A DNA stretch of 64,000 bases from Selaginella moellendorffii (Eukaryota; Plantae; Lycopodiophyta): positions 3,792,451 through 3,856,450 of the forward strand of contig NW_003314263.1 in the NCBI RefSeq assembly GCF_000143415.4. Reading direction: 5' to 3'. A program made the translations under genes and the position numbers. Position 1 is the stretch's first letter. Each line of letters starts with the position of its first letter. Shown here piece after piece: positions 13,735-57,585 of the stretch. The notes beneath the pieces were generated by a model, which was not told the origin of the DNA, made no database searches, and saw nothing but the letters and a program-made list of their open reading frames with translations.

Positions 13735-15689
<1,955 letters not shown>

Positions 15690-16032: not shown

Positions 16033-17678
<1,646 letters not shown>

Positions 17679-35737: not shown

Positions 35738-37076
35738 ATGGCCGCAGCTCATCTGGATGTCGATCTCACGCCACGATCTCCCAATGCGAGATTGTGCGCC
35801 AACGATGGCGGGATTTACGAGTTTTGGCTCAGCGCCCGCTCCAAGATGTTGAAGGAAGCTCGGGTTGGGGCGTCGCGCTTCAGTCTCAATCCTAGGGGTT
35901 TGCTGATGCCGAAATACTCCGATTCTAATCAGATCTTTTATGTGCTCGAAGGTAAGCAATTGTGAATTTTCTTCTCATGCATGCTAAAATTCCGGGATTT
36001 TCTCTCTCCGTCCAGGAAATGGTAAAGTAGGACTGACTTTTGCGGAGAGTCCCGGCGAATGCGTCAAGCTCGTGAAGAAAGGCGATGCTATCGCTGTTCC
36101 TCACGGCACTGTCAACTGGTGGTTTAACTCTGGCACTTCGAAGTTTAGTGTTTTGTGTCTCGGAGACACGAGCAAAAGCCTCAAAGCTGGAGAATTCACT
36201 GTAAGTTCTTGGATTTTTTTTGTTTTGTTTTTGGTCTTGTTGTGACACTCAATCCGCTTGTAGGATTTCTTCCTGGTCGGTCCTGGTAGCGCTGGACTTC
36301 TCAAAGGTTTTACTCCGGACTTCATCGCCCAAGCATGGGATGTCCCAGAAGAAACGGTGAATACTTTGCTCCATAGCCAGAAGGAAGAGAGGATTGTTTT
36401 GCTCAAGGAAGGCATTTCTATGCCGGAGACAACCGATTTGAGCAACTCTCCCTATGGAGAGTTTGCTTACAACTGCGAGGAGGCAAAGCTCGACGTGGAT
36501 ATAAAAAACGGAGGCAGAGTTTCCGTTGTTTCCAGCGATAGCTTGCCGATCTTCAAGCACGTCGGTCTTGGCGCTGATCTCGTCAAGCTTGATCCGGTAA
36601 GTTTTAGCTGATCACTTGGATCTTATAATCACATTTCTTGCAGCATGCGATGTGCTCGCCAGGATTTTCCTCCGACTCCGCGTACCAAGTCACTTACATT
36701 GTCCGTGGAAGCGGTCGAGTCCAAGTCGTGAACCAAAATGGCGAGAGAGTTATCGATCATATACTGGAGCCCGGCTGCCTGTTTATCGTCCCACGATTCC
36801 ACGTCGTCTCAAAGCGAGCAGGAGAAAATGGAATGGAATGGTTCTCGATCATCACCACCGAGAAGTAAGTTCTCTTCTTTTCCTTCCGAGGTTCTGATCG
36901 ACCCAATTTTTTGCTGGAAAAACAGGCCAGTGTTCTCTCATCTCGCTGGAAGAACTGGCGTGATCAAGAGCTTGTCGCCCAAAACGATTTGCGCGGCTTT
37001 TAACGTGGAAGATGGAGTTGAGAAGGAGCTGCGGTCTCGCAGGACAAACGACGCCATCTTCTTCCCACCCAAATAA
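35738..37076 (+). CDS. Bicupin 11S globulin/glutelin-like protein, multi-exon
   Basis: DLTPR..DGGIY..W..LNPRGLLMPKYSDS..YVLEG; KKGDAIAVPHGTVNWWFNSG; AMCSPGFSSDSAYQVTYIVRGSGRVQVV..LFIVPRFHVVSK..GMEWFSIITT..AIFFPPK*. TATAAATA at about 35678. Confidence 0.9.
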
Positions 37077-37401
37077 GATGAAGTCAATGCAAGTCAATAC
37101 AGAGTCAACTCTGTCAATGCGCAATAAAGCTCATTGAGAATTTTTATTCCAAATAAATTCTAGGGTTTATCATCGCATCGCATCGCGCGCGCGAGGGCGC
37201 TGCTTCGTCCTGGCCGATCCGGTAAGCTGCCAGAATGAGATTCTCGGCAATGTAGGACAGGAGATTTGAGCATCGAGGATTGCCAAACTCTAGAACAAAC
37301 GGAGCAAACACTCTCTTCACGATGTCTGGAAGAATTTCGAATGCTTTGATGCTGGAAGGTAGAGCCACACATTTTTTATCCTAGTGACAAAACCATTCGC
37401 T

Positions 37402-39819
37402 ATGCTGTCCAGGACTTCGCTGGATCCTAAAGTTCTCACAGGCGATACGAGAACTTATGGTACTACCGGCAACGCTCATCAGCTCGAGAGAAGCGCTTGC
37501 CTCGCGGCGCTAAAGTCGTGCTCCAGAGCTAGAGACGTCGAAAGTGGCCGGCAAATCCACGCGAACGCGAGAGAAAGTGGTGTGGATTCGGACTCTCACG
37601 TAGCTAGTAGCTTGGTGGCGATGTACATGAAGTGTGGGAGCGTGGTGGAAGCACAGCAGGCCTTCGATAGGATTCCTCGCCCCGACGCAGTGTGCTGGAA
37701 CGCTTTGATCTCGGGCTATGCGGAAAATGGCGAGGCCGAGGTGGCCTTGCAGCTCTTTCGATCGATGCAACAGTGCTGCGGAGCAAGCCCTCGAACTTTT
37801 GCCGCTGCGCTCGCTGCGTGCTCCACTCTCGCAGCTGCCGAAGAAGGCCGGAAAGTTGATGGGAGGATGGTGAAAGTTTTTTCGCTGCAACGAGGCATGG
37901 GAGTTCATCGTCAAGCCGAGGCTGGGATGGGAATAGATGCTATCCATCGCAACGTCTACGTGGGGAATGCTCTCATCGACATGTACGTGAAGTGCCGGAG
38001 CATGGTGCGTGCTCAAGAGGTTTTCGACAGGATGAAGACTCGGGATGTGGTCTCGTGGAACGTATTGATGCTCGGCTACGCACAGGGTGGTGAGAACGAG
38101 GAGCTAGCTCTCGAGATGTTTACGAAGATGGTGTCGTCCCGAGGCTGTCAGCTCGATAGCTGGAGTGTTGTTGCTGCTCTCAAGGCCTGTAGCAATCTCG
38201 CAGCCAAGGAAGAAGCTCGGAATCCACAGGAGAAGCTCAGGTTTCTAGTCACGGGTGTGGCGATCCACGGCACAGCCGAGAGACTGGGATGTGACTCAAA
38301 CATATTCGTGGCCAACGCTCTTCTCAACATGTACGCAAACTGTGCAAGCATGGTGGATGCGAGGAGAGTTTTCGATAAGATGCAGCGCCGGGATGTGGTT
38401 TCCTGGAACACGATCATCCTGGGCTATGCTGAGAACGATGAGGGAAAGATGGCCCTTCAACTCTTTGGAGATTTGCTACACTCTCGGTGCTGTGTACAGG
38501 ACAGGCTGACTTTGGTGGCTGCGCTTAAGGCTAGTTGTACCCTCTCGACTCAAGAACAGGGAAGGCAAGTCGATGGGACGATCGTGAAGCTGAGTTCGCT
38601 GGAAGCAGGAATGGCGGTACACTCGCTGGTATCAGAGCGAGGCTTTGATCTGGAAGACTTGTACGTGGCAAACTGCTTGGTCGACATGTATGGGAAGTGT
38701 GGGAGCATGGCCGATTCTCGCAGAGTTTTCGACCGTGTGAAGCATCGCGACGTTGTTATCTGGAACGCAGTGATCTCGGGATACGCACAGAACGACGAAA
38801 GTGAGGCTGCTCTAGAGCTGTTTGAGGCTCTCTTGTGCGAAGGTGTTTCTCCAACCAGCTTGACAGTCGTTGCGGCTTTCAAGGCTTGCGGCAGTCTCGC
38901 AGCTCAGAACAAGGAAAGCGATCGAATGAGAGCATTGGAAATCACCATGGCTGTTCATCGTGAAGCTGTGACGAAGCTGGAAGCCTCCGAGTGGGACGCT
39001 TACATGACGAGCAGCTTGATCGATGCGTACGCCAAGTGTGGGAGTCTGGCGGATTCCAGCAAAGTTTTCTCGAGCAATACCGGCCAGCTTCGCAACGTGG
39101 TCTCGTGGAACGTCTTGATCCTGGGCTTCGCGGAGAACGGCGATGCTAGACGAGCTTTGAGGCTGTTCCACAGGATGAGACGCGAAGGCTGCCGACCAAA
39201 CGCATCAACGTACGTCGCGGTACTAAAAGCTTGCAGCAACAGTATTCCTTCGAGTCTAGACCTTGGGAGCGAAGTCAAGGCTCTGATCTACCGTGGAGGC
39301 TTTGAGAACGATGGAGTTTTGGCTGGATCCCTGGTTGACTTTCACGGCAAAGCGGGAGACATGGTTTCCGCTCGCCAGGTATTTGACTCGCTAGCGGGAG
39401 ATGGTGACGAGGCCTGGAGTGCGTTGATCGCCGGATACAGCAGGCAAGGGGACGCAAGCCAAGCGCTGACGCTGTTTCACGAGATGGTAAACGCTGGCAT
39501 CAAACCGAATGGTATCACAGCTCTCGCAGTTCTAACCAGCTGCAGCCATGCTGGTTTCGTCGAGGCAGGGAAGAAGTTCTTCCACGAAATGCCATCCAGA
39601 TATGGCATCGTCCCCGAAGTGGAACACTTCCACTGCGTTGTCGATCTTCTCAGCAGAGCAAACCAGCGGGAAGAAACTCTCGCGCTGGTTCAAGGTATGA
39701 CGAAGCGCTGGAACTTTGAAGCTAACGAAGTAACTTGGACTACCATTACAGAAACTCGCGGAGTGGAATCCAGGAGTGGAGACGCTATGCTTGTCGCGAA
39801 GCAAGAATGGCCGTTGTGA
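37402..39819 (+). CDS. PLS-class PPR protein, intronless, with atypical/truncated E domain
   Basis: ORF 37384-39819 with first ATG at 37402. P-L-S triplets (ALIDMYVKC..VFDRM..DVVSWN) and EHFHCVVDLLSRA motif. Confidence 0.85.
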   Translation: MLSRTSLDPKVLTGDTRTYGTTGNAHQLERSACLAALKSCSRARDVESGRQIHANARESGVDSDSHVASSLVAMYMKCGSVVEAQQAFDRIPRPDAVCWNALISGYAENGEAEVALQLFRSMQQCCGASPRTFAAALAACSTLAAAEEGRKVDGRMVKVFSLQRGMGVHRQAEAGMGIDAIHRNVYVGNALIDMYVKCRSMVRAQEVFDRMKTRDVVSWNVLMLGYAQGGENEELALEMFTKMVSSRGCQLDSWSVVAALKACSNLAAKEEARNPQEKLRFLVTGVAIHGTAERLGCDSNIFVANALLNMYANCASMVDARRVFDKMQRRDVVSWNTIILGYAENDEGKMALQLFGDLLHSRCCVQDRLTLVAALKASCTLSTQEQGRQVDGTIVKLSSLEAGMAVHSLVSERGFDLEDLYVANCLVDMYGKCGSMADSRRVFDRVKHRDVVIWNAVISGYAQNDESEAALELFEALLCEGVSPTSLTVVAAFKACGSLAAQNKESDRMRALEITMAVHREAVTKLEASEWDAYMTSSLIDAYAKCGSLADSSKVFSSNTGQLRNVVSWNVLILGFAENGDARRALRLFHRMRREGCRPNASTYVAVLKACSNSIPSSLDLGSEVKALIYRGGFENDGVLAGSLVDFHGKAGDMVSARQVFDSLAGDGDEAWSALIAGYSRQGDASQALTLFHEMVNAGIKPNGITALAVLTSCSHAGFVEAGKKFFHEMPSRYGIVPEVEHFHCVVDLLSRANQREETLALVQGMTKRWNFEANEVTWTTITETRGVESRSGDAMLVAKQEWPL

Positions 39820-40159
39820 TGTGTGAAAGCTCTCCCGTTTCGTTTCATGTCTCCCAGTCTTCACAGTCTTCAAGCATTATGTCGGACAAATTCTGCTGAA
39901 AATGGGATTTTTTTTTTTTTTCAGCATCTTCTAAACAACAAGAAAAACTTGCTAGCATAGCCCAGCATAGAATCAAATATATGTTTAGCTTCTTCTAAAT
40001 ACCCACTCTTGGTATATGTATTAAGCATAGCAGTCTATGTGATAAAGTTTCTTTCTGGGACTTGATGAAACATTTTCTTCATGTAGCATAGAATCTCACT
40101 AAACCGTGTCCGGGATTCGATCAAAGGCAGAATACATTAGTTTACTATTCAATTTATAC

Positions 40160-40328
40160 AATACATTTTTGTGATGAACACGATTTTCTCAAAGTACTAC
40201 ACCGTCCAAGCCTTCAATGAAGAATCCTTCGTGGCTTTGGCCAAATCCAAGTATATGAGCACCTCACATTTGCTTGAGGCAAACCCGTTGCAAAGTTTAT
40301 ATTTTTCCTCTTCATTAGCTTGAGACCT
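40160..40328 (-). pseudogene. TPT1: tRNA 2'-phosphotransferase (Tpt1/KptA) 3' remnant
   Basis: Deleted copy of 45560-45790 (CEVLIYLDLAKA.KD..EGLDG..YFEKIV), with shared downstream flank. Confidence 0.75.
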
Positions 40329-42319
40329 GAAAAGGTGAAGTTTAAATCTGCAGAGTTCCAGCTTCTCTTTTGTTTTTTTTAATGTTACAGCTTGATGCCT
40401 TAAATAACCATTTGGGTTTGCAAATGCAAAGTTAAAAAATTTAACACAATAGCGTGACATGTCAATAACACAACAACACAAGTCATTCTTCTTTTCATTT
40501 GCCCAAAGTGTGTATACTTTTATGATAAAAAAATTAAAGAATATATGGCAGCAAATTTAACAAACGAGTGGCAGTGGATTTGAAGTCTTGAGATTGTCCT
40601 TGTTATATTAAACATTTAAATCCTTATTAATCAGTCTATTGCTGCAGCTATTGAAAAGAGAGCTAAAAGAGGACAAATGATTTTTCATCTAAAATTTATT
40701 ATGGAGGGAGGTACTCTTTAATACACTAAAAAGGTCAGTATGATAAATTGTCTATTAGACAAGAAATTTAGTCAATATTATTCTGTTTAGCTCTTAAAAA
40801 AACTTATTTACTAATAAGTTGGTAGCTGTCAAGAGAGTAAACTTAAAACAAAAAAAAATTAATCTGCACATGTGTAAATATACAGTGCATGCATATTCAT
40901 TGCCATAGAATCAAGGCCAAATCAAGGAAAAGTTGCAAAAGTATTATGCACACAATCACTTTTAAATTCTTATATAAATGATCAAAATGTAATTATTATG
41001 GAATATGCCATGTATGCATGGGTATGACACCTTAGATTGCCATGTTATCTCATACAACATAACATCATTATAAATTTAATGAGGTTTTATTTTTTTTATT
41101 CTTGTTTCATTAAATACAAATTTATAATCTCCTCATTATGACCATCTCTCTCCTCCTTTGTGAGCTCATTATTTACCTCTCATTTTGTGCAACTATACTT
41201 TATCTTTTGCCACTTGGAGGCTTATTTCAATTTTAGTGTGCTCTAATATAAACATTGTGTTTTGATTGCTATTACAAATGCCTCTTATTTCTTGCAACTT
41301 GTTTGCAGCATGATGCATTAATCTAAGTAGTGATTGATTGACACAGTAAGGACAATTAATTGGAGTGGAAAGGCAAGCATAAAAATTTTCTTTGGGTGCT
41401 TAGAGTGTTAAGTATGATAGCTTTTTAATAAGTAAGTGAATCATGTTGTAGTAATTTAGTTTTGTTTTAATTTTTGGTGTTCTTAATCATGTGTGTAGGT
41501 TTTTAGCATTATAATGGTTTGTTATGGTTATGTGTGTTTTTTTCTTAGATTTATAAATTTTTGTTTCAACTTTATGGTTTTTACAGTGATTGTGTTTAGG
41601 AGTGAGGAGTATTGCAACATAACATTTGCATGTAAGTAAATAAATAATTTATATCCATTTTTTTTTCAATATACACACTAATATGTATGTTTTCCATTCT
41701 AAATTTTTTACATGGACAATGAGTCAAGAGTTTTGCATTAGTAGGAATAATGCACATCTAAAATATAACTATAATGTTGCAATTTACTAATTTGTTGGGC
41801 TCAAAAGCTCATATCATCTTGTTGACATAGTCACAAGAGTGCCTCAACCACATAGCAATGGTAGCCTCAACCTACAACATCCAAAACAAGTTTAAAATTC
41901 AACTTATGCAGTCACACTTGCAAATTCTAACCCAAAGTTTAATATGTCATAAATCTAATGTGAGTCAAAATTTATGCAACAGAAAAATTGCATGATCTTG
42001 CTATACATATGTGGCAACACTAATGCATACCCATATGTTAAAAAACAAAAGTTATGTTTAAAATATTATTTTGTGAGTCACATATGTATATTACAACAAT
42101 TCAAACACACAGGCATTTTTATTTTATATATTTTGCAATTTTGTACAATTTTTTGCCACACTACCCACCTTAGGTAAACCTCCTTAAAAAAATTGCCATT
42201 AAAATTTCTTTTTATATTGATCTGCAAATAAAAAATGAAGAAAAACTCTTAAAGGAGTAATTATTATTAATAATATTTAATAATTAAAATATAAAATAAT
42301 ATTAGTTGTATATTTATTA

Positions 42320-43195
42320 TTATAAAGAACATAAAACATGATTTGAAGTTTCTGATGCCCATAAAATTTTGTTTGGATATTTAGTTTCATAGAGAACCAT
42401 ATTGCAATTATTTTGGATAGAAAATATGGTTGATAGCAAACAAAATGGTTGTTTTAAGCAATATGTGTTAGTAGCCCATAAAACACTTTTACCATGATAT
42501 AAAACTAGATTACCATCATGTTGTAAAACTAAAATGCAATTATATAAGTTATATTTAGATATATTTATCTCCCAAATCACATAAATTTTTGAATAAAACT
42601 TAAGATTACAATTTGATTCTAAAATTAAGACATTTTTAGTATTTGAAGAAACTAAGAAATTACTAGTATAAAGTACTGATTTGGTAGAATAAAGACTACT
42701 TATATCAAAATAACAAAAAGAATATAATGTACTATAAGGAAATTGAAATTTTGGATAATAATTTTGTAAATAAAGTTCTGTATCCTTAATTAAACTATAT
42801 TGTATCATAAAATTTATAGTCTCACTTTTAAAAAAATTTGAAAGATTTATATGTATATCATTGAAGCTATTATGTAAAATATTTTCAAAACCTTTTATTA
42901 TACTTTCACCATAAAAGGTTGTTTTAGCAGAACAATCTTTTTTAGCTTTAATAATTAAATTAACAATTCCTTTTGATGTGGATATTTCTGTACTATCACT
43001 ATAACTTGCTGGATATGTATATACAATTTCTAATTTATTTATTAATTTATAACAAGTTGCAATTATTTGTGCAATATCATGTGAATTTAAAACTCTAAGG
43101 TTTCCAAATGATGTATGATATTGTGCTGCATATATAAAATAAAATTTTAAAAATATCAAAAATATTAAAATTAAAATCTTAATTTTGAAAAACAT
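42320..43195 (-). CDS. Secreted protein with unknown N-terminal domain + bulb-type (GNA-like) mannose-binding lectin domain, intronless, extremely AT-rich, 291 aa
   Basis: Hydrophobic signal peptide; three B-lectin subdomains LILESNCNLKFY, LVLQHDGNLVLY..VLWATNT and IQNNCNMVLY..ILWASET. Confidence 0.7.
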   Translation of the reverse strand: MFFKIKILILIFLIFLKFYFIYAAQYHTSFGNLRVLNSHDIAQIIATCYKLINKLEIVYTYPASYSDSTEISTSKGIVNLIIKAKKDCSAKTTFYGESIIKGFENILHNSFNDIHINLSNFFKSETINFMIQYSLIKDTELYLQNYYPKFQFPYSTLYSFCYFDISSLYSTKSVLYTSNFLVSSNTKNVLILESNCNLKFYSKIYVIWEINISKYNLYNCILVLQHDGNLVLYHGKSVLWATNTYCLKQPFCLLSTIFSIQNNCNMVLYETKYPNKILWASETSNHVLCSL

Positions 43196-43667
43196 TATGT
43201 TAACAAAAGTTATATTATTAATCTTTAAAATTGATAAGATTTTTATATTAAAGTTCTAGAACAGAACTATACTTTTACTTTAACTTTTACTTTAATATTT
43301 TATACTATGAATACTTTAATATATTTACTTTATTTTTATTGCTATATATTTTTTATTTTGCTATTCCTAAAATATTTAAGTACTTTGATCCAAATCACAC
43401 TCAGATAGACACTTTGGTATTGCTCCAAATCAATTTCAGTGCAAAATACTTAAGTACTAAAGATTGTGCTCATTGTTAATATATGTCAAATTTGAAATTT
43501 AGTTTTTAAATTCCTCAATCAATCTTCATTTATAGTATATATACCATATGTGAATACAAACAAGATTACACAAATCAGTTGCATAAAGTTAATTCAATCT
43601 AATATTTGTACTTGAGTTTCTATTTTGAAATACAAATGCTTTTTGATTATCTTACGTCTCATCCTGT

Positions 43668-44263
43668 TGAGACGCGGAGGCTGCCGACCAAATGCATCAA
43701 CGTACGTCACGGTGCAGAAAGCTTGCAGCAGCAGTATTCCTTCGAGTCTAGACCTTGGGAGCGAAGTCAAGGCTCTGATCTACCGTGGACCCACCCTGGT
43801 TGACTTTCACGGCAACGCTGGAGACATGGTTTCCGCTCGCCAGGTATTTGACTCGCTACCGGGAGATGGTGACGAGGCCTGGAGTGCGCTGATCGCCGGA
43901 TACAGCAGGCAAGGGGACGCAAGCCAAGTGCTGACGCCGTTTCACGAGATGGTAAACTCTGGCATCAAACCGAATGGTATCACAGCTCTCCATGCTGGTT
44001 TCGTCGAGGCAGGGAAGAAGTTCTTCCACGAAATGCCATCCAGATACGGCCTCATCCCCGAAGAGGAACACTTCCACTGCGTTGTCGATCTTCTCAGCAG
44101 AGCAAACCAGCGGGAAGAAACTCTCGCGCTGGGTCAAGGTATGACGAAGCGCTCGAACTTTGAAGCAAACGAAGTAACTTGGACTACCATTACAGAAACT
44201 CGCGGAGTGGAATCCAGGAGTGGAGACGCTACGCTTGTCGCAAACCAAGAATGGCCGTCGTGA
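43668..44263 (+). pseudogene. 3' fragment duplicate of the 37402-39819 PPR
   Basis: Near-identical to 39177-39819 with short deletions (GFENDGVLAG and AVLTSCS lost). No 5' part. Confidence 0.88.
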
Positions 44264-44339
44264 TGCGTGAACAGTTTGTATATAGAGCTCTCCCATTTCG
44301 TAAACTTTACTACGCGCTGAGCGAGAGCGAGCGCTAGAG

Positions 44340-44782
44340 ATGGGAGCAGCAGCCGCAAAACTTACTGCTCTAGCTGCTCTACTATCGCTCTTCTTCTCAG
44401 GTACTTCCATCTTACGTTCTCTTTAGTTGTTTTACCAGAGATGGCTTTCGTCCAGACATGGTGGAGTAAACGAATGCCAGTTCTCCGCAACGGTGGAATT
44501 CACATGAAAAGAGGGTGTCTTCCTCGAGCCGTCCAAGTAGCGGTCCAGCTATGAGGAAGAATTCTACTCAATCCTTCTGGTCCATTGAGCTTGGCCGAGT
44601 TTACAGTGGCCAAGACACAATGGATATAAGCTTGGTGGATGGTTTCGACGTTGGAGTGGCGGTGAATCTCAGCGGAGGAGGATGCATTCGAAATGGAAGC
44701 CCGGAGCAGTGAGATTAGTGAAGGATGATCCCCAGTTGCAATCCCGGGGGAGACTACACGTGGTGTTAGTGCCCTTGGTTTC
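44340..44782 (+). pseudogene. Thaumatin-like (PR-5) remnant, adjoining the TRIM insertion
   Basis: Signal peptide MGAAAAKLTALAALLSLFFS followed by broken frames containing GQDTMDISLVDGFDVGVAVNLSGGGC (thaumatin DISLVDGF motif). Confidence 0.6.
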
Positions 44783-45093
44783 TGTTGGAAAATGGATCTG
44801 GACAGGCCAGGGATTGAACCCAAGACCTCCTACACCGGTGCCAGGTGCTCTACCACTGAGCTACCTGCCCTGGTTGTGTGTATGTTCAGCTTAGTTCTAA
44901 CACTCCCCCTAAGCTAAACACGACCTGCCAGTCCATGCCTACCACAGGCCATCCAACTATAGCTCCGATACCATGTTGGAAAATGGATCTAGACAGGCCG
45001 GGGAATGAACCCAGGACCTCCTACACCAGTGCCAGGTGCTCTACCACTGAGCTACCTGCCCTGGTTGTGTGCATGTTCAGCTTAGTTCTAACA
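44783..45093 (-). mobile_element. Complete TRIM (non-autonomous LTR retrotransposon) with tRNA-derived LTRs
   Basis: Two 120-bp direct repeats (44783-44902, 44974-45093) bounded by TGTT...AACA. 5-bp TSD GTTTC at 44778-44782 and 45094-45098. Minus-strand PBS TGGTATCGGAGC (44973-44962) and PPT AGGGGGAG (44910-44903). About 6 mismatches between the LTRs. Confidence 0.93.
44799..44870 (-). ncRNA. tRNA-like 72-nt cloverleaf inside the LTR (second copy 44990-45061), not a canonical tRNA
   Basis: GGGCAGG TA GCTC AGTGGTA GAGC A CCTGG CACCGGT GTAGG AGGTC TTGGG TTCAATC CCTGG CCTGTCC A. Acceptor stem, D arm/A box and T arm/B box are present; the anticodon arm is aberrant. Confidence 0.75.
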
Positions 45094-45545
45094 GTTTCAA
45101 TGATTGGAAGTTTTGAGACCTCTCAAGTAAACTTTCCAGACCCCGATATTTTCGTCTCCATGGCATATTAACACTGCTCTTACATGGAATGCGCTTTCAA
45201 GAACCACAGAGTCTCCAAGCATTATTCTGCTGAAAATGCGTTGTCAGCATCTTCTAAACAACCTAAATGTGAGTAACTTCGGCATAGAGTGATTCGGTAT
45301 ATCATAGCAATCTATGTGATCAAGTTTCTTTCTGGGACTTGATCAAACATTTTCTTCGTGTCTTCTATGGAACCTAGAGATTAAGCATTACATTCCACGA
45401 CACCAAGTTGTATTCTGGCATCTCGCAAAACACAGAGGGCCGAGCTCTCAATTTGCCCGTTTTGGGCATTAGAGTTTCACTAAACCGTGTCCCGGATTTG
45501 ATCAAAAGCACAACAATACATTGATTTACTAATTCGATTTATACA

Positions 45546-46138
45546 CTATTCTTCCTTTGTGACGTACACAATTTTCTCAAAGTACTCACGAGGAACTACA
45601 CCATCGAAGCCTTCAGTGAATACAACCCCGTTTTCGGACATGAAGAACTTCATGCCATCCTTCATGGCTTTGGCCAAATCCAAGTATATGAGCACCTCAC
45701 AGTTGCTCCTCATCCCACTTATCACACCGTCTTGAGGCAAACCCGTCGCAAAGTGTATATGGTTCTTCTTCATTCGCTTGAGACCCGTTTTGCGAATCCC
45801 CCTAAAGTTGTTTCGAAAGGTGCCATGGACGCACACAGGCACTTCGTCGGCTCCCTTAGCAGCTCTGTTGTTTGCACTACATCCATAGTGTTACCTTGGT
45901 TGGCCCGTATGTAGACTTGGCTGTCGTCCTCCACGATAGTTGAGAATCTCTGGTTTGGATCGCAGGTTACCATGTTGATCACGTCGGCTACTGTGAATGA
46001 AGCGAGCGGGATTCCACCGCTGGCTTTCACGTCCAACTCTAGCAAATCATTGATATTGCAATATCCGTCACTGCGAATCGTCAAGTCCATTTTGACAGCA
46101 CCATGCCTCAAAACCCACGCAATAGTCTTACTCAACAT
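45546..46138 (-). pseudogene. TPT1: Intronless tRNA 2'-phosphotransferase (Tpt1/KptA), split by one frameshift near 45845
   Basis: LSKTIAWVLRHGA..DGY..QRF..IRANQG + PVCVHGT..GLKRMKKNHIHFATGLP..VISGMR..SENGVVFTEGFDGVVP. TATATA about 50 bp upstream. Confidence 0.85.
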
Positions 46139-48094
46139 GTCAAGCTATCGCATTAAGGCCGCCCCAGGAATATCCTTAACAAGGTTATATATAAACACTA
46201 GCAGGGATCCCAGCTCCACTGGAAAAAAGTAAAGAATGTTTTCAATATGAAAAAATGCAATCATACATACTTTGGGTTAGAACAACACATTTAAAAAAAA
46301 TAAAATAATAGAACAATGACTTATGATGTTTGTCACTGCACAGAAACTTTGCAGGTGCAAAATGCAGCTTCAGCACTTGCATCCACTCTAGCCATGTCAA
46401 AGAGGGGAAGAAATTATTGGCAAAGATCCTGGGATTATCCTTTTCTAAGTTTGGTAGTTGACAATTTGTCAAAAAAGAATGGGAGAGTCTCTCTTTGCAT
46501 TCTCCCCACCACCAGTAAGTCTTTTAGCAATTCAATGAGCTCTTCATTAGTCTTTGCAACTAAGTTGATTAAGAATACCTTCAAAACCAAGAGAAAGAGT
46601 ATACATCTATAAGTTCAATTACCAGATTCTGGCAACCAGCTCTGGACTCTCAAGAATCTAGAAAAAAAAAAACTTCACGTACTTCTGTTGTCACTACTCC
46701 TGTAAAGGGTCATAGTCTAAACTCCAATCATGAAATTAAGAAGTTCTTTGATGCAACTTGTCTGATCAGAAAACATTAGAAGAGGATTGTTATGGCCCAA
46801 GTGTTGTCGAAGTTGGGTGGCTCAGAAAAGTTGCACAAGTCACTTAGTTCCGGAGGTAGATCCTCTTGTTATATGGCACCACAAACACAATGGTCATCTG
46901 GATGCTTGTCTTACTCTTTGCATTTTTTTTGAACAATGCTTCAAGGTACAACTGGAGAAATTTGCTAGAGATGCTCATCTTCTACATATTATATGTTATG
47001 TAAATCTGTCTATTCTTTAATTCTTTTAAAGGCATCTTGTTCGTTCTCACTCATCACGTACTATTGATGATGGAAGTGAGGCATGGGAGGCCACTATGTG
47101 TAGCTCCAAGACATGTGTCATACTAACCTTCCCTAAGTTGCATGAGTAGTTGATGTTTCACATATATCTTAGTATTATCTGGCGCACTGAAAAAAAGTGG
47201 CATTGACAATGAGGTAGCCAATGAACTTACATGTGACTTAAGTTGTGTAGACCGGGAAAAAATGGTGAAAGAAATCTATCCAAGAGCTTTTAACTCACGA
47301 TCCAATCTTAACAGCAATCCAGGTGGCTTGAAGTACTTGTTTGTTGTGATCACAACTTTCTCAAGCAGAGAATTTGAATTATCTGAGAAGAATCTGAGTA
47401 GTCATCTGGCTTGATGGGACAACACATTTGCAGTTGAAAATAACAGGAACAAATGTGATGAATTTAACTATGTTCTATGCCTCGTAGATCTTATTAGTGA
47501 AGCCCTCTAAAGCAAGGCCAAGGCCTATTCTCTGTGTTGTATTTATCCTGAAATCCTGACATAAGAACAAAGTCAAATTCCAAAAACTTTTACTGAGTTT
47601 GACACGGCAGCATTGTTTTCTACACGCCTGGGAGTGACCCTCTCCTTCTCTAAGCCACACATCCACCAGGCTCCCACACAACTTAAGCACCGTGGAGAGG
47701 CTTATGGCAAAACCATCACAAACAAACAACTCCAGAACCACCTCCTTGCCAATCCCAGCATCAGTGACATCTATGACACAGCACTGTGGCAAGCCATCTT
47801 GTCAAAGCTGGCTGAGAATCCACCAAGTTTCCACATTTCATGTACATGCCCTGTTTATCAATTTTTCTTATACTATATACCATTGGATGCATTAGAATCA
47901 ATTTTGGCTTGTTGGAAATTGTCTTTACGAATGTTAACAGTTAGAATGAACACTACATTACTGAAATCAATGCCATGAACCACTAAAATAGTGACTCGTC
48001 TTTTAAATCTACTATGTAAACCTGTGAAAAAAAAACTAAAGAAACTACCTGATGCAAACACAGAGTGCAGCTTGTTTTGTATCAGCTTAAGTTC

Positions 48095-49720
48095 TTATTC
48101 CTCATCATACCACGGGTCTGCTGCTCACACCACTCTGATAACCGAGCCCAGTGATCGATCTCTCCAAGAACATCCTCTTGTTAAATCCATCAAACTCGCA
48201 GTTTCCACCTGTGAGTAGAATCATCCCATCCATAACTCGGCTGACGAGTTAGTTTGGCACTCTCCTCATGGCAATGGATGCCATTTCTCCCACTTCTGCC
48301 TGATCTACAGGCTGGAAGAATATCTCTGAATCGTTCCACACCAAGTACTATTTGGTAGTCCTTCTCAGTAAGAGGCCGTTGTATTACAAACTCTGGCACT
48401 ATTTCCTGCAGTCCGGGTGGTGGCGCTGAAGTATATGAAAGATCAATTTCCTGGAAGTAAAGCAGTTAGAAAAGGAAAAGAAAAGTAGTGACGAAAGTGA
48501 TATACCTTGAGTTTCGAGGTTAGACGACTGAGTTCTGCTTCATCTTCATCTACATCTTCTTCTACTTCTTCTTTGTAGTCTCTGTCCATTTGCTTGTACA
48601 TATGCCAGTCCTCATCATTCATGCCAAAAGTATCTTCGTCCAAAGGTTGCTTGCATTAAGAGTTTCATTTGTTCTCTCTACACGGCAGTCAGCCTTTCAC
48701 TTTTGACCGTGAGTCTGCAACTACAGTACCATGGCCGTTGGTTGTGCAAACTTTCTGTTGTTTTCTTTGGTCTACCTTTGTTGAAACTTCACAATGCCTG
48801 GCCTTCAACTCCTCTAGATACTTCTCTAGGTTTTCCTATGATGAGAAAGAGTTGTAAATATTTAGAAAGAAAAAGATGTAAAAGATGTACAAGCGATACT
48901 CTTCTTCCATTTGTTGCTTGTGCTCTCTCTGTAGGGACTCTTCTTAACATCTTTGCCTTGCTCGAATGTGTCTATCAAGTGCACGATCCCGATTTTTTGG
49001 GTTTTATGCCAGTGGTGCTGTTGTTTTTAAAAAAATCTTTGCTTTCTTTTTCGCTTCAATTGCCAATGCCAAGCACACAACAGCTGACAAAAAGAAAATT
49101 TGATATACACAACTGTTCCTTGAATAAAAGGCTTTCTGCATTTTCGAGCAGAGGGTACTTTTGTGATGCTAGAATGTCACCACTATTCACTATCTTTTAA
49201 CACCTTAATGCTTTCTCCGTTAGCTTTACATATACTACTTCAATCAGTCTAGATCCCGAAAAAGGTTCTTCAAGTATTCCGCCTCATTTTCTAAATCAAT
49301 AAGCTTTGAGGATAGTTTTGCTGCTGCCATTTCTTGAAGCCGCTATCACTGCTTTTCTCTCAAAGCTGCCAGTTCATCCTCCCCAGGCTGCTCTTTTTCA
49401 GGTGGCAGTATCCATGGCACCTACCACCATCTCATTTTCACTAATGCCTAGGGAGATTATAACTGATGAAATAAATTGCTACAACATTGACACACCGAAC
49501 TGCTTACCTAAAATAGTTTTAGCTCTGCAGTATAGTCGACTGTAATGCAGCTATTCTCTGTTTTTCAAAAACCACATGTGGTAGTTATGCTATATTCAAT
49601 CAAATCGCTATGGACTTACAGATATTGAAGGCACAAAAAGCACTTTAGATAATCAGAGACATGAAAGCCTCCTACCGATTTTCTGCAGCATACTTCCATA
49701 ATAGGCTCCTTAATAGATAT
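48095..49720 (-). pseudogene. ARP5: Actin-related protein 5 (INO80 subunit) remnant with introns
   Basis: ENLEKYLEELKARH..; EDTFGMNDEDWHMYKQM..DEDEAELSRLTSKLK|EID..; RPLTEKDYQIVLGVERFR; ILLTGG. Stops and frameshifts present. Confidence 0.78.
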
Positions 49721-49859
49721 CTGACACAATACGAGTTTTGAACTTACAACAAAAGCAAAAACTAACAGAGAAACCATCAGTGTATTGGTATAATATGAGT
49801 TGTAGCAAACAAGTATACCATCAGAATTGCACGTGTGTGTGCATGCATGTGCGTGCGCT

Positions 49860-50215
49860 CACACACACACACACACACACAGAGAGAGCACGCACCTGTC
49901 CAGTCGATTACAGTGTCAATCCATAAGGGTGTGAGAACTGGATTGCTGGCCGCGATGGCGGCAAAATCCAGCACCGCCGGCTTGATCCCTGCGATCCAAT
50001 ATTTGGACTGGATCCCGATCCGTAGGAGATGGCATCGAGGGAATCCCTCACAGAGCTGGATAGCTGGAAGCTTGTGACGTCCTCACTGCAGCAATCATGG
50101 CGGGGGAGCGCCACCATCGCCAGCCACCTGTGTGCCGACGCTAGGTTCTTGTTGCACCAGGATCTCTTTTGGTGCGTTGCTCATCACCATCCCCAGTGCC
50201 ATGGAAGATTGATAG

Positions 50216-50253
<38 letters not shown>

Positions 50254-50295
50254 ATGCACCTGTCCAGTTGGTTACAGTGTCAATCCATAAGGGTG
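49860..50295. repeat. (CA)n and (GA)n microsatellites, each followed by the same ~44-bp sequence
   Basis: (CA)~10 at 49860 and (GA)~17 at 50217. gca(c/t)gcacctgtccagt..ttacagtgtcaatccataagggtg occurs at about 49887 and 50252. Confidence 0.75.
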
Positions 50296-50776
50296 CAAGA
50301 ATTGATCACGTCCACAATCAGTACAAATATGAAACCCTCAGATATAATAACTGTTTTTAAGAAAGTATTACATCTAAACCATTGATTTGACAAATCAAAG
50401 GGTAAGAGAATATCTGTCCCCCGATGCCAATAGCACTTTTAAATAAAGAAGTACTAGCAAAAGTCCCAGCTACGCTGGGAGCATTGTGTTCATTTCTGAT
50501 ATTTTATTAATTTCAAAGAATTGTAATAGTAATTGAAATTTTTAACATAATCATAATTATAAGATATATAGTTAAACATAACATAATATTTATATTAAAA
50601 ATCCTTTCTAAAATTGAATCTATCACCAACACACATCATAACATCATAAATAAAACTCATTATATTATATCATATTTAAAACTGATTGTTGAGAGAAGTC
50701 TTGGATATTCTATAAATGGAATTGCTCACTGCAGGATCCCATGGCCAGATGAGCCATTTAGAAATTGAGGTTTGAT

Positions 50777-50931
50777 NNNNNNNNNNNNNNNNNNNNNNNN
50801 NNNNNNNNNNNNNNNNNNNNNNNNNNNNNNNNNNNNNNNNNNNNNNNNNNNNNNNNNNNNNNNNNNNNNNNNNNNNNNNNNNNNNNNNNNNNNNNNNNNN
50901 NNNNNNNNNNNNNNNNNNNNNNNNNNNNNNN
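50777..50931. other. Assembly gap (run of N)
   Basis: Ns in the sequence. Nearby 50530-50740 is repeated at 51590-51770. Confidence 1.
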
Positions 50932-52214
50932 AAAATATAAACATTTATCTTTTCATCATTTCAGACTGAAATTTGGGAATTGCATGATACTAAGTCAAAG
51001 ATGTTAGGTTAATGTGTTATATTTTCTTTTCAAACTTTTAATATTTTATATATTTATCTTTGATATTCCCTTTTTGCCCAATATTTATAGTTATGCATTT
51101 TGAGAGTAGTATTTAAAATTAGAAGTATTCTATTATTTATCATAAACTTCTTTTTGTCTATATTTTTATATAGAGAGAATGCTAATCTGAAATAAGATTA
51201 TTATCTCTCTATATTTATGTATATATATATATTTAAAAGTAGGGCTTTATAACACTGTTATGAATGCTGGAATTTTATTATGATAAATGAATGGTTATGG
51301 TTTACTCTATACTGGGGTAGAGTAGGGTTTGATAATATATAATTTTTCTCTATGTTAGATTTAAATATATCATAAAATTCCTGAATAGTATATAGATAGG
51401 TTTAATATAATTAAATTGTAGTTGTTTTTCATGTATAAAAATTATGTAGGATTAAGTGTTAGAAACTTTTATGATAATATATATATGTTAGCCATTTGAC
51501 AACTCAATATATTTAATTTTATTTATGTTTTTTTAAAATAACAATAAGATTACTGATAAAAAATTATTTTAGACAAGATTTATAATCATAATTATAATTT
51601 TTAACATAATAATAATTATAAGATATATGGTTAAACATAATATAATATTTATATTAAAAATCCCATCTACAATTGTCTCTATCAGCAACAGACATCATTA
51701 CATAATAAATAAAACTCATAACATTGTATCTTCGATCTTCTATAAGTGGAATTACTCATTATGAGATCCCACTCTTAAGGATGGGTTCAATACAAATGGT
51801 TGTATGAGTGAAAATCCAGAAACTTAATATTTTGTGAGAGGAAGAAGCTAAAGCTTTAAAAGATCATATATGTATATAGATGCTCATAGTGGCAGTGGTA
51901 GTGATTATTATTTTGTATTCTACTCTATATGACCTACCATATTTCGTATGATCTATATCATAGACTCAGTTTTAGAAATAAAAAATTAGTCTATGTACTA
52001 AAATTGAAATTATATTATTAAGCTAGATGCATATTATAATATTTATATTAAATTATTGATAATTTTAGTGATAATAATATAATACTGTATTAAAATTATA
52101 CATTAGTGATAATATTATATTTTAATATTTAAAATTATTTATTAATTCACATATTTATATGTAACAAAAATTTTATTTATTAAATCTATTCTGTAGCAAT
52201 GTTTGCACAACCAT

Positions 52215-52710
52215 ATTTGTCCATGTGACCAACTCTTCTTCTAAAGCAGTGATTTCTGGTACAAAGACAGTATCTGAGATGTTGTCTATCAACCTGAAGG
52301 TTTCCAAGTTCTCTGCTATTTTTCATGTTATTGTGTCAGTGAAAGAATTCCAGACTGGTGACTTCTATTACCCAGCATGCATGAAGGTTGTCAATGGAAG
52401 CCAATGTGGCAAGAAGGTTACTCAGGTTTTGGAAAGTATGTGGCAATGCAACTCTTGTGACACTGATTCTGGAGATATTCACTTCAAATATGCACTACAC
52501 TTGTGTATTCTGGACAGCACTGGACATATATAGGCGGTTGCATTTGATGATGCTAATGAAATTGTAGATATGCCTGCATGTAAGCTGGCTGCGCTACAAG
52601 ATGATGATTATACTGTTTTTTCAACCGTAATGGACTCTATTTGATCAAAGATGTACAATCTGAAGATTCGTTGCAAGCTCGAGAGCTACAGAGATACCAA
52701 AAAATTATAG
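52215..52710 (+). pseudogene. RPA1: RPA70-like C-terminal OB fold/Zn ribbon fragment
   Basis: FYYPACMKVVNGSQCGKKVT..WQCNSCD..KYALHLCILDSTGHI*AVAFDD..KLESYRD, with in-frame stops. Confidence 0.8.
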
Positions 52711-52919
52711 TTGGTCTTGACACTTAAAAGAAAAAATGTGTGAGAAAACAAAAAGTATGTTTTATTTCTTTCTACTATTGTTTTATAATTTGTTGTGTGT
52801 GGTATCAAGTTTCTAAGTATAAGCCAAGCTGGAGCTTTCAAAACTAATGTTGTGTAGAAGTTGATGAATGATTAAAACAATTTGTAATAATGTAATTAGT
52901 TAAAAACTGTTTAAATTAA

Positions 52920-53660
52920 CTAAGTATTGGTTGTAGCTAGCAACCATCCATTCACACAGCCATGAGACATCTTCTAATTCAGGATCAACTAAAAGGGTAG
53001 AGCCACCTGTGACTGAAATAGACTTGCCATTGTAATCTGAAATCCGGCTGCCCTTCAGGCATACAGTAGGCTTCTGCCCTCGTCCAAGTTTCTCCTCGAT
53101 TTCTGAACCTTCATCTTCGGCCTTTGAATCCCACAGACACATGTCTATACTGTGGCCTGATTCATCACTCAAAGAAAGCATCCTCCTTCTCATGAATGCT
53201 CCAGAATCCTTAGGAGAAATGTTTGTCTATTCCACATTACACCACCAATCACGTCTATAAATGTCTCTTGGCCGAGCTTAGAAGCATCTAAAACACTCAT
53301 TCTATTAAGAACAACATTTGGAATACGTAGATCGTCCTCTACACACTTGATCTCCATAGTCTTGCTTGCTTTTATCTCCCAATTTGATTTATATGGTGTA
53401 TATGCTGGTTTAGAGTGTTGTATACCACTGTTCCCTGAAAATATATAGACACTGCCTTGCTCAATATCATGAAAGATGCTTTGCATTCATGCCAAACCCA
53501 ACAATATGTATTTTGGAACTTTATGCATCGGCAACAGCAACTGACATAACACACCCAGCTGTGCCTGTTTCAAAGAATACAAGTTTCCCTTTGTGTCTCA
53601 CCTTGGCATGAAAAGACCATCGGTAGCAGTGGCCCCTGATGTTCTTATATGGCATCTCAG
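52920..53660 (-). pseudogene. RPA1: RPA70-like DBD-A/DBD-B fragment
   Basis: IEQGSVYIFS..FIDVIGGV..RRMLSLSDESGHSIDMCLW..LKGSRISDYNGKSISV..STLLVDPE..LCEW, with frameshifts. Confidence 0.8.
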
Positions 53661-54744
53661 CTTCTTAGAACTCTGTCCCTTAACATGAAACAGAGAAAAA
53701 AAATAAAAAATGTTATATACATACATACATAATGTAATTAGTTACAAACAATTTGTAACTAAATAACTAATTTGTAATGTATTTAGACAAAACTAACATT
53801 AGTAGTCGTAGTGCTTTACATTTGTGTTTATTTTTTTATAAAAGAAATATCAGAAGAAAAATCTGGGAGTGTCATATATATTTCAGTTCTTGGCTTTTCG
53901 TTTATATTGTTTCTTTATATTAACAAAGAAATATTCAAGCATGAGATTTCATAGGTGGTTATGTTAAAGGTTTTGAATATGAAAGTGTGGGAAAGCTTAC
54001 TTGATTGTAAGAAGAAGTTCAGCCTTTTCTATATCATGATTTTTAAATACATATTCTGTAATTACATTAACCTTGAAGGATATGCACTCTAGTGTTCATT
54101 GGATCACCAATGAAAGGCACATTGATATTGTAAACATCTATCACTTTGGCTTCAGTTCTGTCATCTTGGACCATTACACAACTTTGCAATCTCTAGAGAC
54201 AGACCAGATATTCTTCTGGCTGCTTGCTGAGCAGAACATTAAGTTGTAGTTATCTGCGCAAGTAGAGTATGTCATAATCCATGAGTTTTTTTCACGAACG
54301 TGCCTCAACAATCCACACACAGCAGGCCTGTATATTTGATTGGAGTATATGAAGCAGTGTGATCCATGCAATGCAATTATACACATCTCTTTCCAGGTAT
54401 GTAATACATTAGTGGGAGAATTAGGAATGTTTGTAAACAGCTGATTTACAAACCTTCTGATGTTGAAAGGTTAGGAATATATTCAATGGAATCGTTGCCC
54501 CCATCAATGAAAGTTCCCATGTAAGTCAATGCTTGAAGTGCCTAAAAAAAGATAAACAAATCACAAACTTTAATGAGCATATCACCTCAAGTGCTGGGTT
54601 CTTTCAAATGTTCCCCTGCAAAGATCCAGTCCATTGTTCTAGACTCTAACAATTTCTGCATAAAAGCTTCAGATGCTTCAACATCAGAAATCAAAGAGTA
54701 AAGGCACAGATGTAAAGGCAAAGGTTTATTTTTTTTAAGGAATG

Positions 54745-54990
54745 TCAAAGTTCCTTTGTTCCATATAGTTGATCAACAAAATGCGAAGGTATAGCTACTT
54801 GGAACGTGTCTTGTCCAAGGTGAAGCTGGCCCTTTAGCGTGATGTGTTCCTTTATAGGTCCTGCATATTTACATATTTTACATATTGCTTCATCTTTAGA
54901 AGTTTGTTGCAATCTTGATCCGCAGCATAATGAACAAACTGTGTGTATAAAAACTGGACAGAGCTTATCTACTTCAAAGTATCCAGGTAT
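54745..54990 (-). pseudogene. Additional exon with CxxC...CxxC Zn ribbon, resembling an RPA-C-type OB fold
   Basis: VCSLCCGSRLQQTSKDEAICKICKY..LKGQLHLGQDTFQVAI..VDQLYG, flanked by AG acceptor-like sequence. Confidence 0.4.
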
Positions 54991-55837
54991 CTGCAAAACA
55001 ACGTGTATTTAATATGGGCTTGTTTCATTTCCTTTCGCACTTACCCCTGTGCATTCCCTTGCAATATTCCGAAAAAGTCCCAGCTACGCTGGGAGCATAG
55101 TGCATTGTATACATTGTACATTGTATACATAGAATATTGCATTCCCTTGCAATATTCCGAAAAACAGAGTCAAGGAATTATTTTGGCATCATCTATTATA
55201 CATGAAACAATGCTCATGCCTGTGACATTTGCTCTCTTGAAATAACCGTCTCCTTGTAAATTAATGAAACATCTTGTTGGTGGAGTTCCAGAAAAACATT
55301 CATTCATCAACTCTTTGAATAATTCCATTATGTTGCCATGGAATTTGAGCTGCCATCATATAGATTATTGTCAGGGATCCACATGCTATATTGAACTTAC
55401 TATATCATATCAGACTCGTTGATGTTATCTGTTATTGTGAGTTGACCACTGTTGTAGCCTATATCATTGATACTCACTACAACACCTTCAACAGAACCTA
55501 CAGATTCTCGGCCTCTACATGACTCCACAAAGTTTGCAATGCTGATAGTTGGTACAGACAGACGAAATTGTGGCACTATAAGCTATTAACTAAAAGCTTA
55601 CGTTTTCTTCCTAGCATAATAGATGCTCATCATTGTGGTGGGTCAATAAAAAGAGGAGATGCACTGGGCCTGGGTTGGAACTCAAGTCATCATGTTGTTT
55701 CGCATTTCTCTAGCATGACTCCACATTCAAATATATATAGCCACAGATACCACCTACTCAAAAATAAACTGGAGATAACCATAAAGGAAGTGCATAGAAA
55801 GAAAAATAGGCAGCTAGCCTCTTCCCACTCTTTCATG

Positions 55838-56588
55838 CACTGTGGTCCATGCACTGTGTGCGAGTGGAATCCCGAATGGGACAGCCTTTTGCCCGATGAG
55901 CAGGCCAGGCTCAAGGCTCGGCAGGGCGTGAAATACGTTTGCCTCGATGGCTTACAGGTGCTCAACTCCGAGCTAGCAAGCAAAAAAATTTAGCAGAAGC
56001 AGCGAGCGAGTAAGGAGTGACGAAGAACCAAACAAATAAGACAAATACATTATCAGAGATGAAACTCTAGAACCGGTTGCCAAGGACGGTGTCACCATTG
56101 GCGAAGTTTGCATACGTGGGAACATGGTGTTCAAGGGATACTTGAACAATCCAGACTCTGGGGACTTGGCAGTTTGGCATCCCAATGGATACATCAAGAT
56201 CAAGGATCGAGCCAAGGATATTATCATTTCTGGAGGGGAGAACATTAGCAGCCTGGAAGTGGAGAGCATCTTGTACAGGTAAAAGGAGAGTTTTTCCTTC
56301 TTTGTTTCTTGTTAAAGTTTGCTTCTTTTTCATCCAGGCATCCAGCAGTGTTGGAAGCTGCTGTGGTGGCGCAGCCAGATGAGCAGTGGTCCATGTGCGT
56401 TTGTGTCCCTCAAGCACGGCGTGAGAAGCAACAAGGAGGAGATACTCTTGTTGTATCGACAGCATTTATGGAAGTTCATGGTGCTAAAGAGCATCGTCTT
56501 TCTCACAGCCTTGGACAAAACTGCGACTGGCAAGATCCAAAACCAGGTGCTGTGCAGCAAAGCAAGAGCTCTTGGCAGTGTCAAGTAA
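55838..56588 (+). pseudogene. Acyl-activating enzyme (AMP-dependent ligase, AAE clade) 3' remnant
   Basis: GPCTVCEWNPEWDSLLPDEQARLKARQGV; [58 protein letters not shown]; HPAVLEAAVVAQPDEQW; KTATGKIQ. Internal deletions. Confidence 0.82.
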
Positions 56589-56672
56589 ATCAGCAAGCTC
56601 TACAAGCCAACTATTGACGTTGTAAAGCTTGAACTACAAGCCAACTATTGAACTTGTAAAGCTTGAAATCGT

Positions 56673-57585
56673 TCATGGCCTGGAAAATCCCCAATCTAGC
56701 CTGGCAATTTTAAATCGGTCAGCTACTGTCCGTCCGTTGTAATGTACTGGAATGAAAAATAAATAAGTAACATGCAAGAACCAAGAACGCAATTCATCTA
56801 CCTCAAACAGTAGCTTTGTCTTATCAGCTGTCACTCTTGCATATCCAAATGCCGACCTTCGAATCAAGCTCCATGAACTAAACTGTCGACAAAAAAAATA
56901 GAAAAGGTAGAATATCAATACCATATAAAGAGCTTGAATATAGGAAACAAAGCTGCAAGCTTACATTATGAGGGAAGTCATCCAAGGTGAATTCAGCCAT
57001 GCCAACCACGGTGTGAACTGGAGCTGAGTAAATTGTAGTGTCAAAGAAATCGACGCCTGCTAAATCCTTGATCGGGTGCTGCAGGCAGCGCCCTGAAACA
57101 CAGCACAAGTTCGCAGGTAATTGTGAACATGCCCCCACACTGCTAAATCAACCTGTGCAAAAAAAAAAAGAAAAAAGAAAAAAGACAGTTTCATTCTAGT
57201 TTTCCCTTTGAAGAGCTCGTGTTTTACCTTGTTTCTCAAGAGCAATGGTTCCACAGCTGCTACAAATTTCGGATCCACACCTGGTAAAGTTTAGAAATAA
57301 ATCCCCCGCAATTGAGTGGAGTACATAGGTCGATGACTGAAAGAAAAATAGCACACATGAGTTTACAGAATGAAAATGTGAATAAAAACAGTTACCCTGT
57401 GAAAACTATCCATGGTGTACTGAATCTGCCAACAGATTCAAGGTCAGATTTCATCCAAGCGTACTGTAGAAGAAGGTTTCGTTGAAGGAAAGATGAAAAG
57501 AATAAGAATGCATACTTGTTTGCTGGTCGAGCTCCAGTCATGTTCTGTAGAGATGACTGTGAAATGCATGGGGCCAATAGCCATG
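56673..57585 (-). pseudogene. Purple acid phosphatase / nucleotide pyrophosphatase-phosphodiesterase 3' remnant
   Basis: GPMHFTVISTEHDW..Q|YAWMKSDLESV.RFSTPWIVFTG|HRPMYS..EPLLLRNK|VDLAVWGHVHNY.RTC..APVHTVVGMA..WSLIRRSAFGY. The N-terminal half is absent. Confidence 0.8.

Follow-up and report, generated by a model that had tools for sequence, protein, structure and literature searches.

Helenus elements are TRIMs that carry tRNA-derived sequence in their LTRs and were named by Kojima in 2024 (PMC10886601). Box A (TRGCY..YGG) and box B (GGTTC) are conserved among them, and the plant and fungal families have 5-bp TSDs (PMC10886601). In most Helenus families the tRNA-like module has been judged to be no working tRNA gene (Kojima 2024, PMC10886601). 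Pol III transcription and mobilisation in trans were put forward as a hypothesis for these elements (PMC10886601), and T-runs directly follow the tRNA-like module in three hymenopteran Helenus LTRs (PMC10886601, Data S1). Cassandra LTRs likewise keep both a Pol III promoter and terminators (PMC7215508, PMC10886601). The sole plant family of Helenus, Helenus-1_SMo, was described from the Selaginella moellendorffii assembly GCA_000143415.2, with an LTR of 120 bp, an internal part of 85 bp, a TSD of 5 bp and a printed consensus (PMC10886601, Data S1, Table S1). The description of this plant family is limited to lengths and TSD, and gives no PBS type, copy number or polymorphism (PMC10886601). No later primary work on Helenus was found in a literature search; two later papers cite Kojima 2024 and go no further.

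A 311-bp element of this kind was identified on the minus strand at 44783-45093 of the window, which is the whole 64-kb stretch of S. moellendorffii DNA analysed here. The element is very probably one genomic copy of Helenus-1_SMo, slightly decayed, which in one haplotype entered the spacer separating a PPR gene fragment from Tpt1 in minus-strand orientation, and this reading is combined with a Pol III model of the family. It lies approximately 450 bp past the Tpt1 stop codon, in the same orientation as Tpt1. The finding itself is already known, since the family and its consensus were published in 2024 from the same S. moellendorffii assembly (PMC10886601). The novelty implied by an earlier note on this DNA thus fails, and its statement that tRNA-bearing TRIMs are called Helenus is right. 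Its functional proposal, Pol III transcription plus mobilisation in trans by an iMet-primed partner, coincides with the hypothesis in print (PMC10886601). The element and its immediate flanks comprise the following features:

43625-44263, plus strand: PPR gene fragment (flank), with Pfam PPR_2 and PPR matches and RNA-seq cover at 43694-44257.
44778-44782, no strand: TSD GTTTC, left copy, identical to 45094-45098.
44783-44902, minus strand: 3' LTR, 120 nt, TGTTAG...CCAACA, from repeat finding and alignment; 117/120 against the Helenus-1_SMo consensus.
44789-44792, minus strand: TTTT run of the 3' LTR at LTR positions 111-114, a candidate Pol III terminator and candidate R/U5 border.
44799-44870, minus strand: tRNA-like module of the 3' LTR; Rfam RF00005, 46.1 bits; ARAGORN Arg(CCG); A box 44853-44863; B box GGTTCAATCCC 44810-44820.
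44903-44973, minus strand: internal region, 71 nt; PPT GCTTAGGGGGAG 44903-44914; PBS TGGTATCGGAGC 44962-44973.
44974-45093, minus strand: 5' LTR, 120 nt, from repeat finding and alignment; 117/120 against the Helenus-1_SMo consensus.
44980-44983, minus strand: TTTT run of the 5' LTR at LTR positions 111-114, from a T-run pattern match.
44990-45061, minus strand: tRNA-like module of the 5' LTR; Rfam RF00005, 46.6 bits; ARAGORN Gln(CTG); A box 45044-45054; B box 45001-45011, with A58-to-T at 45005.
45094-45098, no strand: TSD GTTTC, right copy, identical to 44778-44782.
45546-46138, minus strand: RNA 2'-phosphotransferase (Tpt1/KptA) exons (flank), with Pfam PTS_2-RNA on both ORF pieces.

Repeat finding detected one direct-repeat family at the element, formed by two units of 120 nt each (44783-44902 and 44974-45093) whose starts lie 191 nt apart. 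The two LTRs are identical at 114/120 aligned positions (95%), with exactly 6 differences. Both are bounded by TG..CA. Read on the minus strand, the first LTR runs from TGTTAGAAC to TTTTCCAACA, and both have the ends TGTTAG...CCAACA. In this reading the 5' LTR is directly followed by the PBS TGGTATCGGAGC (44973-44962) and the rest of the 71-nt internal part, at the end of which the PPT GCTTAGGGGGAG (44914-44903) directly precedes the 3' LTR. The PBS shares 11/12 positions with the plant iMet-type PBS TGGTATCAGAGC quoted for Cassandra (PMC7215508), and the mismatched position could still pair as G-U. A 120-nt repeat at 95% identity, together with matching TSD, PBS and PPT, is far outside the expectation for a chance origin. 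The structural reading bears out the earlier note, which had claimed a complete 311-bp TRIM with two 120-bp TG..CA LTRs (about 6 differences), a GTTTC TSD, an iMet-type PBS, a PPT, only 71 bp of internal sequence and, in each LTR, a tRNA-derived module oriented like the PBS and PPT. No further LTR or internal-part matches were found by blastn within the 64-kb window.

The comparison with the Helenus-1_SMo consensus was made by eye against the printed Data S1. Each LTR matches the consensus at 117/120 positions. The private changes of the 5' LTR are at LTR positions 66, 89 and 103 (window 45028, 45005 and 44991), and those of the 3' LTR are at LTR positions 22, 80 and 94 (window 44881, 44823 and 44809). 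At all 6 of the 6 LTR-LTR differences one LTR retains the consensus base in this by-eye comparison, which fits identical LTRs at insertion followed by independent decay. The copy departs from the 85-nt internal consensus by the loss of 12 nt (agggatgtgtgg), by two single-nucleotide deletions in G runs, of which the PPT contains one, and by two transitions, so that 69/71 aligned positions match by eye. Two short LTRs of 120 nt around a short non-coding internal part of 71 nt make the element a TRIM in the Helenus sense. The tRNA-derived LTR sequence, the PBS after the 5' LTR, the PPT before the 3' LTR and the 5-bp TSD are those of Helenus, while the identity of at least 80% to the consensus (by eye) and the host Selaginella moellendorffii are those of Helenus-1_SMo. 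The copy and the published family share the species and assembly, the PBS start TGGTATCGGAGCTAT, the PPT, the 5-bp TSD and the tRNA-like module. They differ in length, the family being 325 bp with an 85-nt internal part and the copy 311 bp with a 71-nt internal part (14 nt lost), and in the six private LTR substitutions of the copy, one of which lies in the B box of the 5' LTR.

A locus allelic to the window (L001), reached through the protein cluster of the PPR gene at 37402-39816, was found on scaffold GL377609.1 (493285-515483, reversed) of GCA_000143415.2, with the same gene order of PPR, PPR fragment, Tpt1 and pyruvate kinase. By blastn, window 36005-44779 aligns to positions 8356-17236 of this locus and window 45103-46197 to its positions 17238-18319. 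The element has no blastn match at the allelic locus and Rfam finds no tRNA match there. The scaffold thus appears to represent a second haplotype, or a close paralogous segment, without the element, and a site lacking the insertion, which the earlier note had proposed to look for, has been located. The window junction reads ..GTGCCCTTG[GTTTC]-element-[GTTTC]AATGATTGGAAGTTTTGAG.., and the allelic junction reads ..GTGCCTTTGGT AATTGGAAGTTTTGAG.. Compared with the predicted pre-insertion sequence ..CTTGGTTTCAATGATTGGAAG.., the allelic sequence ..TTTGGT|AATTGGAAG.. has a 6-nt indel, a shortfall in the allelic locus that counts against an empty site. It could instead mean that the other haplotype once carried the element and lost it by a deletion that took a few flanking bases too. 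The per-LTR divergence of 2.5%, which is not below the per-lineage flank divergence of 1.3-2.2%, also speaks for such a loss. However, such a deletion would have had to end within a few bases of both borders, and one more indel of 3 nt would be required. The 1-kb flanks show 2.6-4.3% substitution divergence from the allelic locus and 5-12 gap events per 1-2 kb, and with small indels this frequent in the region, one of 6 nt at the insertion point is nothing unusual. Given the flank rate, three changes in a 120-nt LTR fall inside Poisson noise, and these are methylation-type changes. Compared with a deletion that happens to stop at both element borders, a true empty site is the more parsimonious account, and we regard the loss of a formerly present element as unlikely. 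The absence of the element from the matching site of the other haplotype suggests that this copy inserted after the haplotypes diverged. The LTR-LTR divergence is 5% (6/120), or approximately 0.052 after Jukes-Cantor correction. A substitution rate of 1.3e-8 per site per year has been derived from rice and is uncalibrated for Selaginella. At this rate the insertion would be about 2 million years old, with the wide error that attends six events.

The genomic surroundings of the insertion show several further features. Intronless PPR genes are clustered at 1555-7335 and 37384-39819, and two haplotype copies and several paralogues of PPR genes fall into one 90% protein cluster. The ORF at 5194-7335 has the S. 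moellendorffii protein XP_024541019.1 as a cluster mate, and the gene at 37402-39816 shares 97% identity with a named S. moellendorffii protein. Local haplotype divergence at the PPR cluster amounts to 2-4% substitutions and many indels, well above the 1.1% at pyruvate kinase. Within the PPR fragment, at 43744-44154, certain positions, e.g., 43816, 43819, 43929 and 44051, consistently disagree with the window in public RNA-seq reads and in DNA contigs. All RNA reads mapped on this fragment are 95-99% alike to the window, and their source is probably the other haplotype or a paralogue; a few carry a joint skipping 44114-44198. An AT-rich island (GC approximately 0.29) occupies approximately 40330-43665 and contains a B-lectin-like ORF on the minus strand at 42320-43195, which scores 28 bits against Pfam B_lectin, short of the cut-off. 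On either side of the island stands one copy of a direct duplication (39176-40327 and 43668-45785) whose unit extends from the 3' end of PPR to that of Tpt1, with blocks that are 88%, 93% and 68% identical. The arrangement resembles the outcome of an insertion or duplication that left a very long target duplication, and the allelic haplotype shares the layout of island and duplication. The duplicate segment 39176-40327 does not span the insertion site of the element and offers no paralogous empty site. The other haplotype lacks a 12-kb AT-rich segment that occupies 46197-58191 here (GC 0.34-0.36, N gap at 50777-50931), and approximately 180 bp separate its Tpt1 from its pyruvate kinase. No LTR pair and no ORF of at least 170 aa were found in this 12-kb segment.

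To retrieve signs of further copies, Logan contigs of the public DNA run X1 were mapped on 43600-46400. The summed depth is approximately 2,000-4,200 on the element and approximately 100-1,600 on the covered flanks. Loose contig ends at the LTR borders run into unrelated, differing flanks, and another loose end, at 44909, extends into CTAAGCTGAACACGCCACACATCCCTACCT, a consensus-type internal segment missing from this copy. The base at 44823 is G in almost the whole X1 depth, as it is in the consensus at LTR position 80. Depth, differing flanks and the consensus-type segment together show that other consensus-form copies of the family exist in the genome of that run. A protein-collection search with a 97-aa open frame running through LTR and internal part gave nothing. 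Five of the 6 LTR changes are C-to-T-type transitions, two in CG and two in CHG context, a pattern that would be expected of a methylated, silenced repeat. With three private substitutions per LTR, the change of the invariant A58 in the 5' B box, the loss of 14 nt of internal sequence and the C-to-T-type pattern, this copy is probably dead.

The tRNA-like module occupies 72 nt, LTR positions 33-104, in each LTR. Rfam tRNA (RF00005) matches it on the minus strand at 44990-45061 with 46.6 bits and at 44799-44870 with 46.1 bits, both above the gathering score of 29, and ARAGORN calls tRNA-Gln(CTG) in the 5' LTR and tRNA-Arg(CCG) in the 3' LTR on the same two intervals. By box pattern match, both LTRs have a flawless A box (TAGCTCAGTGG) and also the GGTTC core of the B box. 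The B box is GGTTCAATCCC in the 3' LTR and in the consensus; in the 5' LTR it is GGTTCATTCCC, where A58 just after GGTTC is changed to T at 45005 and the B-box pattern fails. Seven pairs, G3-U70 among them, form the acceptor stem, four the D arm and five the T arm. In the anticodon stem, four pairs are followed by a G-G mismatch at the closing position, and the anticodon loop, CACCGGT, carries A at position 33 instead of U. The two T-stem changes of the 3' LTR still pair as G-U. In the 5' LTR the changes turn the anticodon CCG into CTG, hit A58 of the B box and turn the last acceptor pair into G-U. MFE folds of the two modules gave no cloverleaf and were not stabler than shuffles (z = -0.3 and -1.25), which was counted against the preferred explanation. 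Real tRNAs often misfold in silico too, and the MFE result therefore says little either way. G3-U70 and A73 are alanine identity elements, and the acceptor stem of the module has both, a lead to the parent isotype.

The module is a tRNA-derived promoter relic and no working tRNA gene, as judged from the A at position 33, the G-G closing mismatch, the anticodon differing between the LTRs and the lack of an MFE cloverleaf. The covariance models agree with the earlier note that 72 of the 120 bp of each LTR are tRNA-like. Its statement that A and B boxes are kept holds for the A box in both LTRs and for the B box in the 3' LTR, with the A58-to-T change in the 5' LTR, and its wording of a broken anticodon arm is fair. 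Since ARAGORN and Rfam call two tRNAs 191 nt apart, the locus could at first sight be taken for two tandemly duplicated tRNA genes or pseudogenes without any mobile element. However, the repeated unit is 120 nt long with TG..CA ends, a PBS follows the first unit, a PPT precedes the second, and a 5-bp TSD encloses both. In addition, the whole corresponds to a TRIM consensus in print, and the allelic site lacks it. The two copies also carry unlike anticodons and have lost both U33 and the pair that closes the anticodon stem. The LTR-PBS-PPT-TSD anatomy rules out tandem tRNA genes, the probability of which we consider negligible.

At gathering score, Rfam matches nothing in the window or the allelic locus except the two LTR modules. 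False tRNA gene calls, as predicted by the earlier note, are thus a reality, the sole tRNA calls in these 86 kb being the two LTRs. For annotation, this means that both tRNA calls (ARAGORN, Rfam) in the window are retrotransposon LTRs, and that tRNA counts in Selaginella need masking with Helenus-1_SMo. An exact-pattern scan of metagenome contigs with a 33-nt piece of the module gave 0 matches.

A pattern search showed that the only sense-strand runs of at least 4 T in the element are at LTR positions 111-114 of each LTR, eight nt past the tRNA-like 3' end and six nt ahead of the LTR end. We lean towards a model in which active master copies would be transcribed by RNA polymerase III from the A/B-box promoter, the template would be primed by the iMet tRNA, and the element would be mobilised in trans. 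Transcription of such copies would start just upstream of LTR position 33, driven by the internal A/B-box promoter. The weak T4 at LTR 111-114 would be read through in the 5' LTR and would act as the terminator in the 3' LTR. The resulting RNA would have a U3 of approximately 30 nt, an R of approximately 85 nt at both ends and a U5 of 6 nt, in addition to the PBS and PPT, and could serve as a workable template for LTR-type reverse transcription. Priming would occur at the PBS by the 3' end of the initiator-Met tRNA. Reverse transcription and integration in trans may be carried out by an autonomous element, probably of the Copia type, that makes 5-bp TSDs. Plant integrases of the Copia or Gypsy type are compatible with the 5-bp TSD. 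No autonomous partner was found in the window, where no LTR match and, in ten ORFs (mostly the largest) searched against Pfam, no retrotransposon domain were detected.

The same Helenus-1_SMo copy could also belong to a family whose transposition template comes from Pol II or from read-through of a neighbour, as in ordinary TRIMs. The tRNA-like module would then not be the promoter of that template and may be a passenger left over when a SINE or tRNA inserted into an ancestral LTR, or have another role. In the 5' LTR the T4 run separates the tRNA-like module from the PBS, which favors this explanation and counts against the Pol III model, as part of the Pol III transcripts would end ahead of the PBS. 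For Helenus, PMC10886601 offers no experimental evidence of transcription by Pol III, and a probable RNA contig (run X5) spans the flank-LTR border of another copy, as host co-transcription would give. However, the A box is perfect, and the consensus B box is intact at canonical spacing. No TATA-like motif is present in the 32 nt of LTR upstream of the module, and no AATAAA in the element. The sole run of at least 4 T lies six nt from the LTR end, where a terminator that defines R/U5 is expected, and Cassandra provides a precedent for this layout. Standard RNA-seq also shows hardly any reads of the element: in approximately 12% of the raw reads of each of the runs X31 and X32, approximately 1 read per run lies on it. 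The low count stands against the Pol III model as well, although libraries of this poly(A) type would miss short, non-polyadenylated Pol III RNAs and thus speak neither for nor against them. The depth on the nearby PPR fragment is 6-17 in X31 and X32. Transcription by Pol II or from a neighbour appears rather improbable to us, and the Pol III model is preferred.

Taking the Pol III model and the allelic comparison together, we tentatively suggest that Helenus-1_SMo was mobile recently enough to differ in presence between the two haplotypes of the sequenced S. moellendorffii plant, and that the LTR layout with a sole T4 reflects a Pol III unit in which transcription passes the terminator of the 5' LTR and stops at that of the 3' LTR; this combined proposal has a less than even chance of being right. 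Neither the haplotype polymorphism nor the T4 reading appears in the 2024 description (PMC10886601). If true, Pol III-driven LTR retrotransposition could be tested in Helenus-1_SMo as a compact plant system. The class, in which an LTR retrotransposon bears a SINE-like Pol III module, is biologically interesting but was reported in 2024. The small additions made here for the plant family are the haplotype without this copy, a PBS of iMet type and the place of the sole T4 run.

The earlier note had proposed a comparison with both Helenus and Cassandra entries, and the outcome is a match to Helenus-1_SMo at 117/120 positions per LTR (by eye) and no 5S module. A search of 44000-46000 with Rfam at E<=1 gave tRNA only, and no 5S rRNA match was found at gathering score in the window. 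Membership in Cassandra was therefore rejected, as its defining 5S rRNA-derived LTR sequence is absent (Rfam). Cassandra nevertheless resembles the element in being a non-autonomous TRIM with a Pol III-type small-RNA module and a T-run in each LTR (PMC7215508, PMC10886601). It also has a 5-bp TSD and an iMet-type PBS a few nt after the module, which reads TGGTATCAGAGC in Cassandra and differs by one base here. The Cassandra module is 5S-derived with A, IE and C boxes, whereas the module here is tRNA-derived and has a type 2 promoter with A and B boxes. Cassandra elements are 565-860 bp long and their transcription has been demonstrated, whereas the element here is 311 bp long and known from sequence. 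The tRNA-derived SINEs (SINE2) share with the element a tRNA-derived head with A and B boxes, a short non-coding body and mobilisation in trans. However, SINE2 elements have no LTRs, PBS or PPT, depend on LINE machinery, and show variable TSDs and A-rich or LINE-like tails, whereas the element here has the full layout of an LTR retrotransposon.
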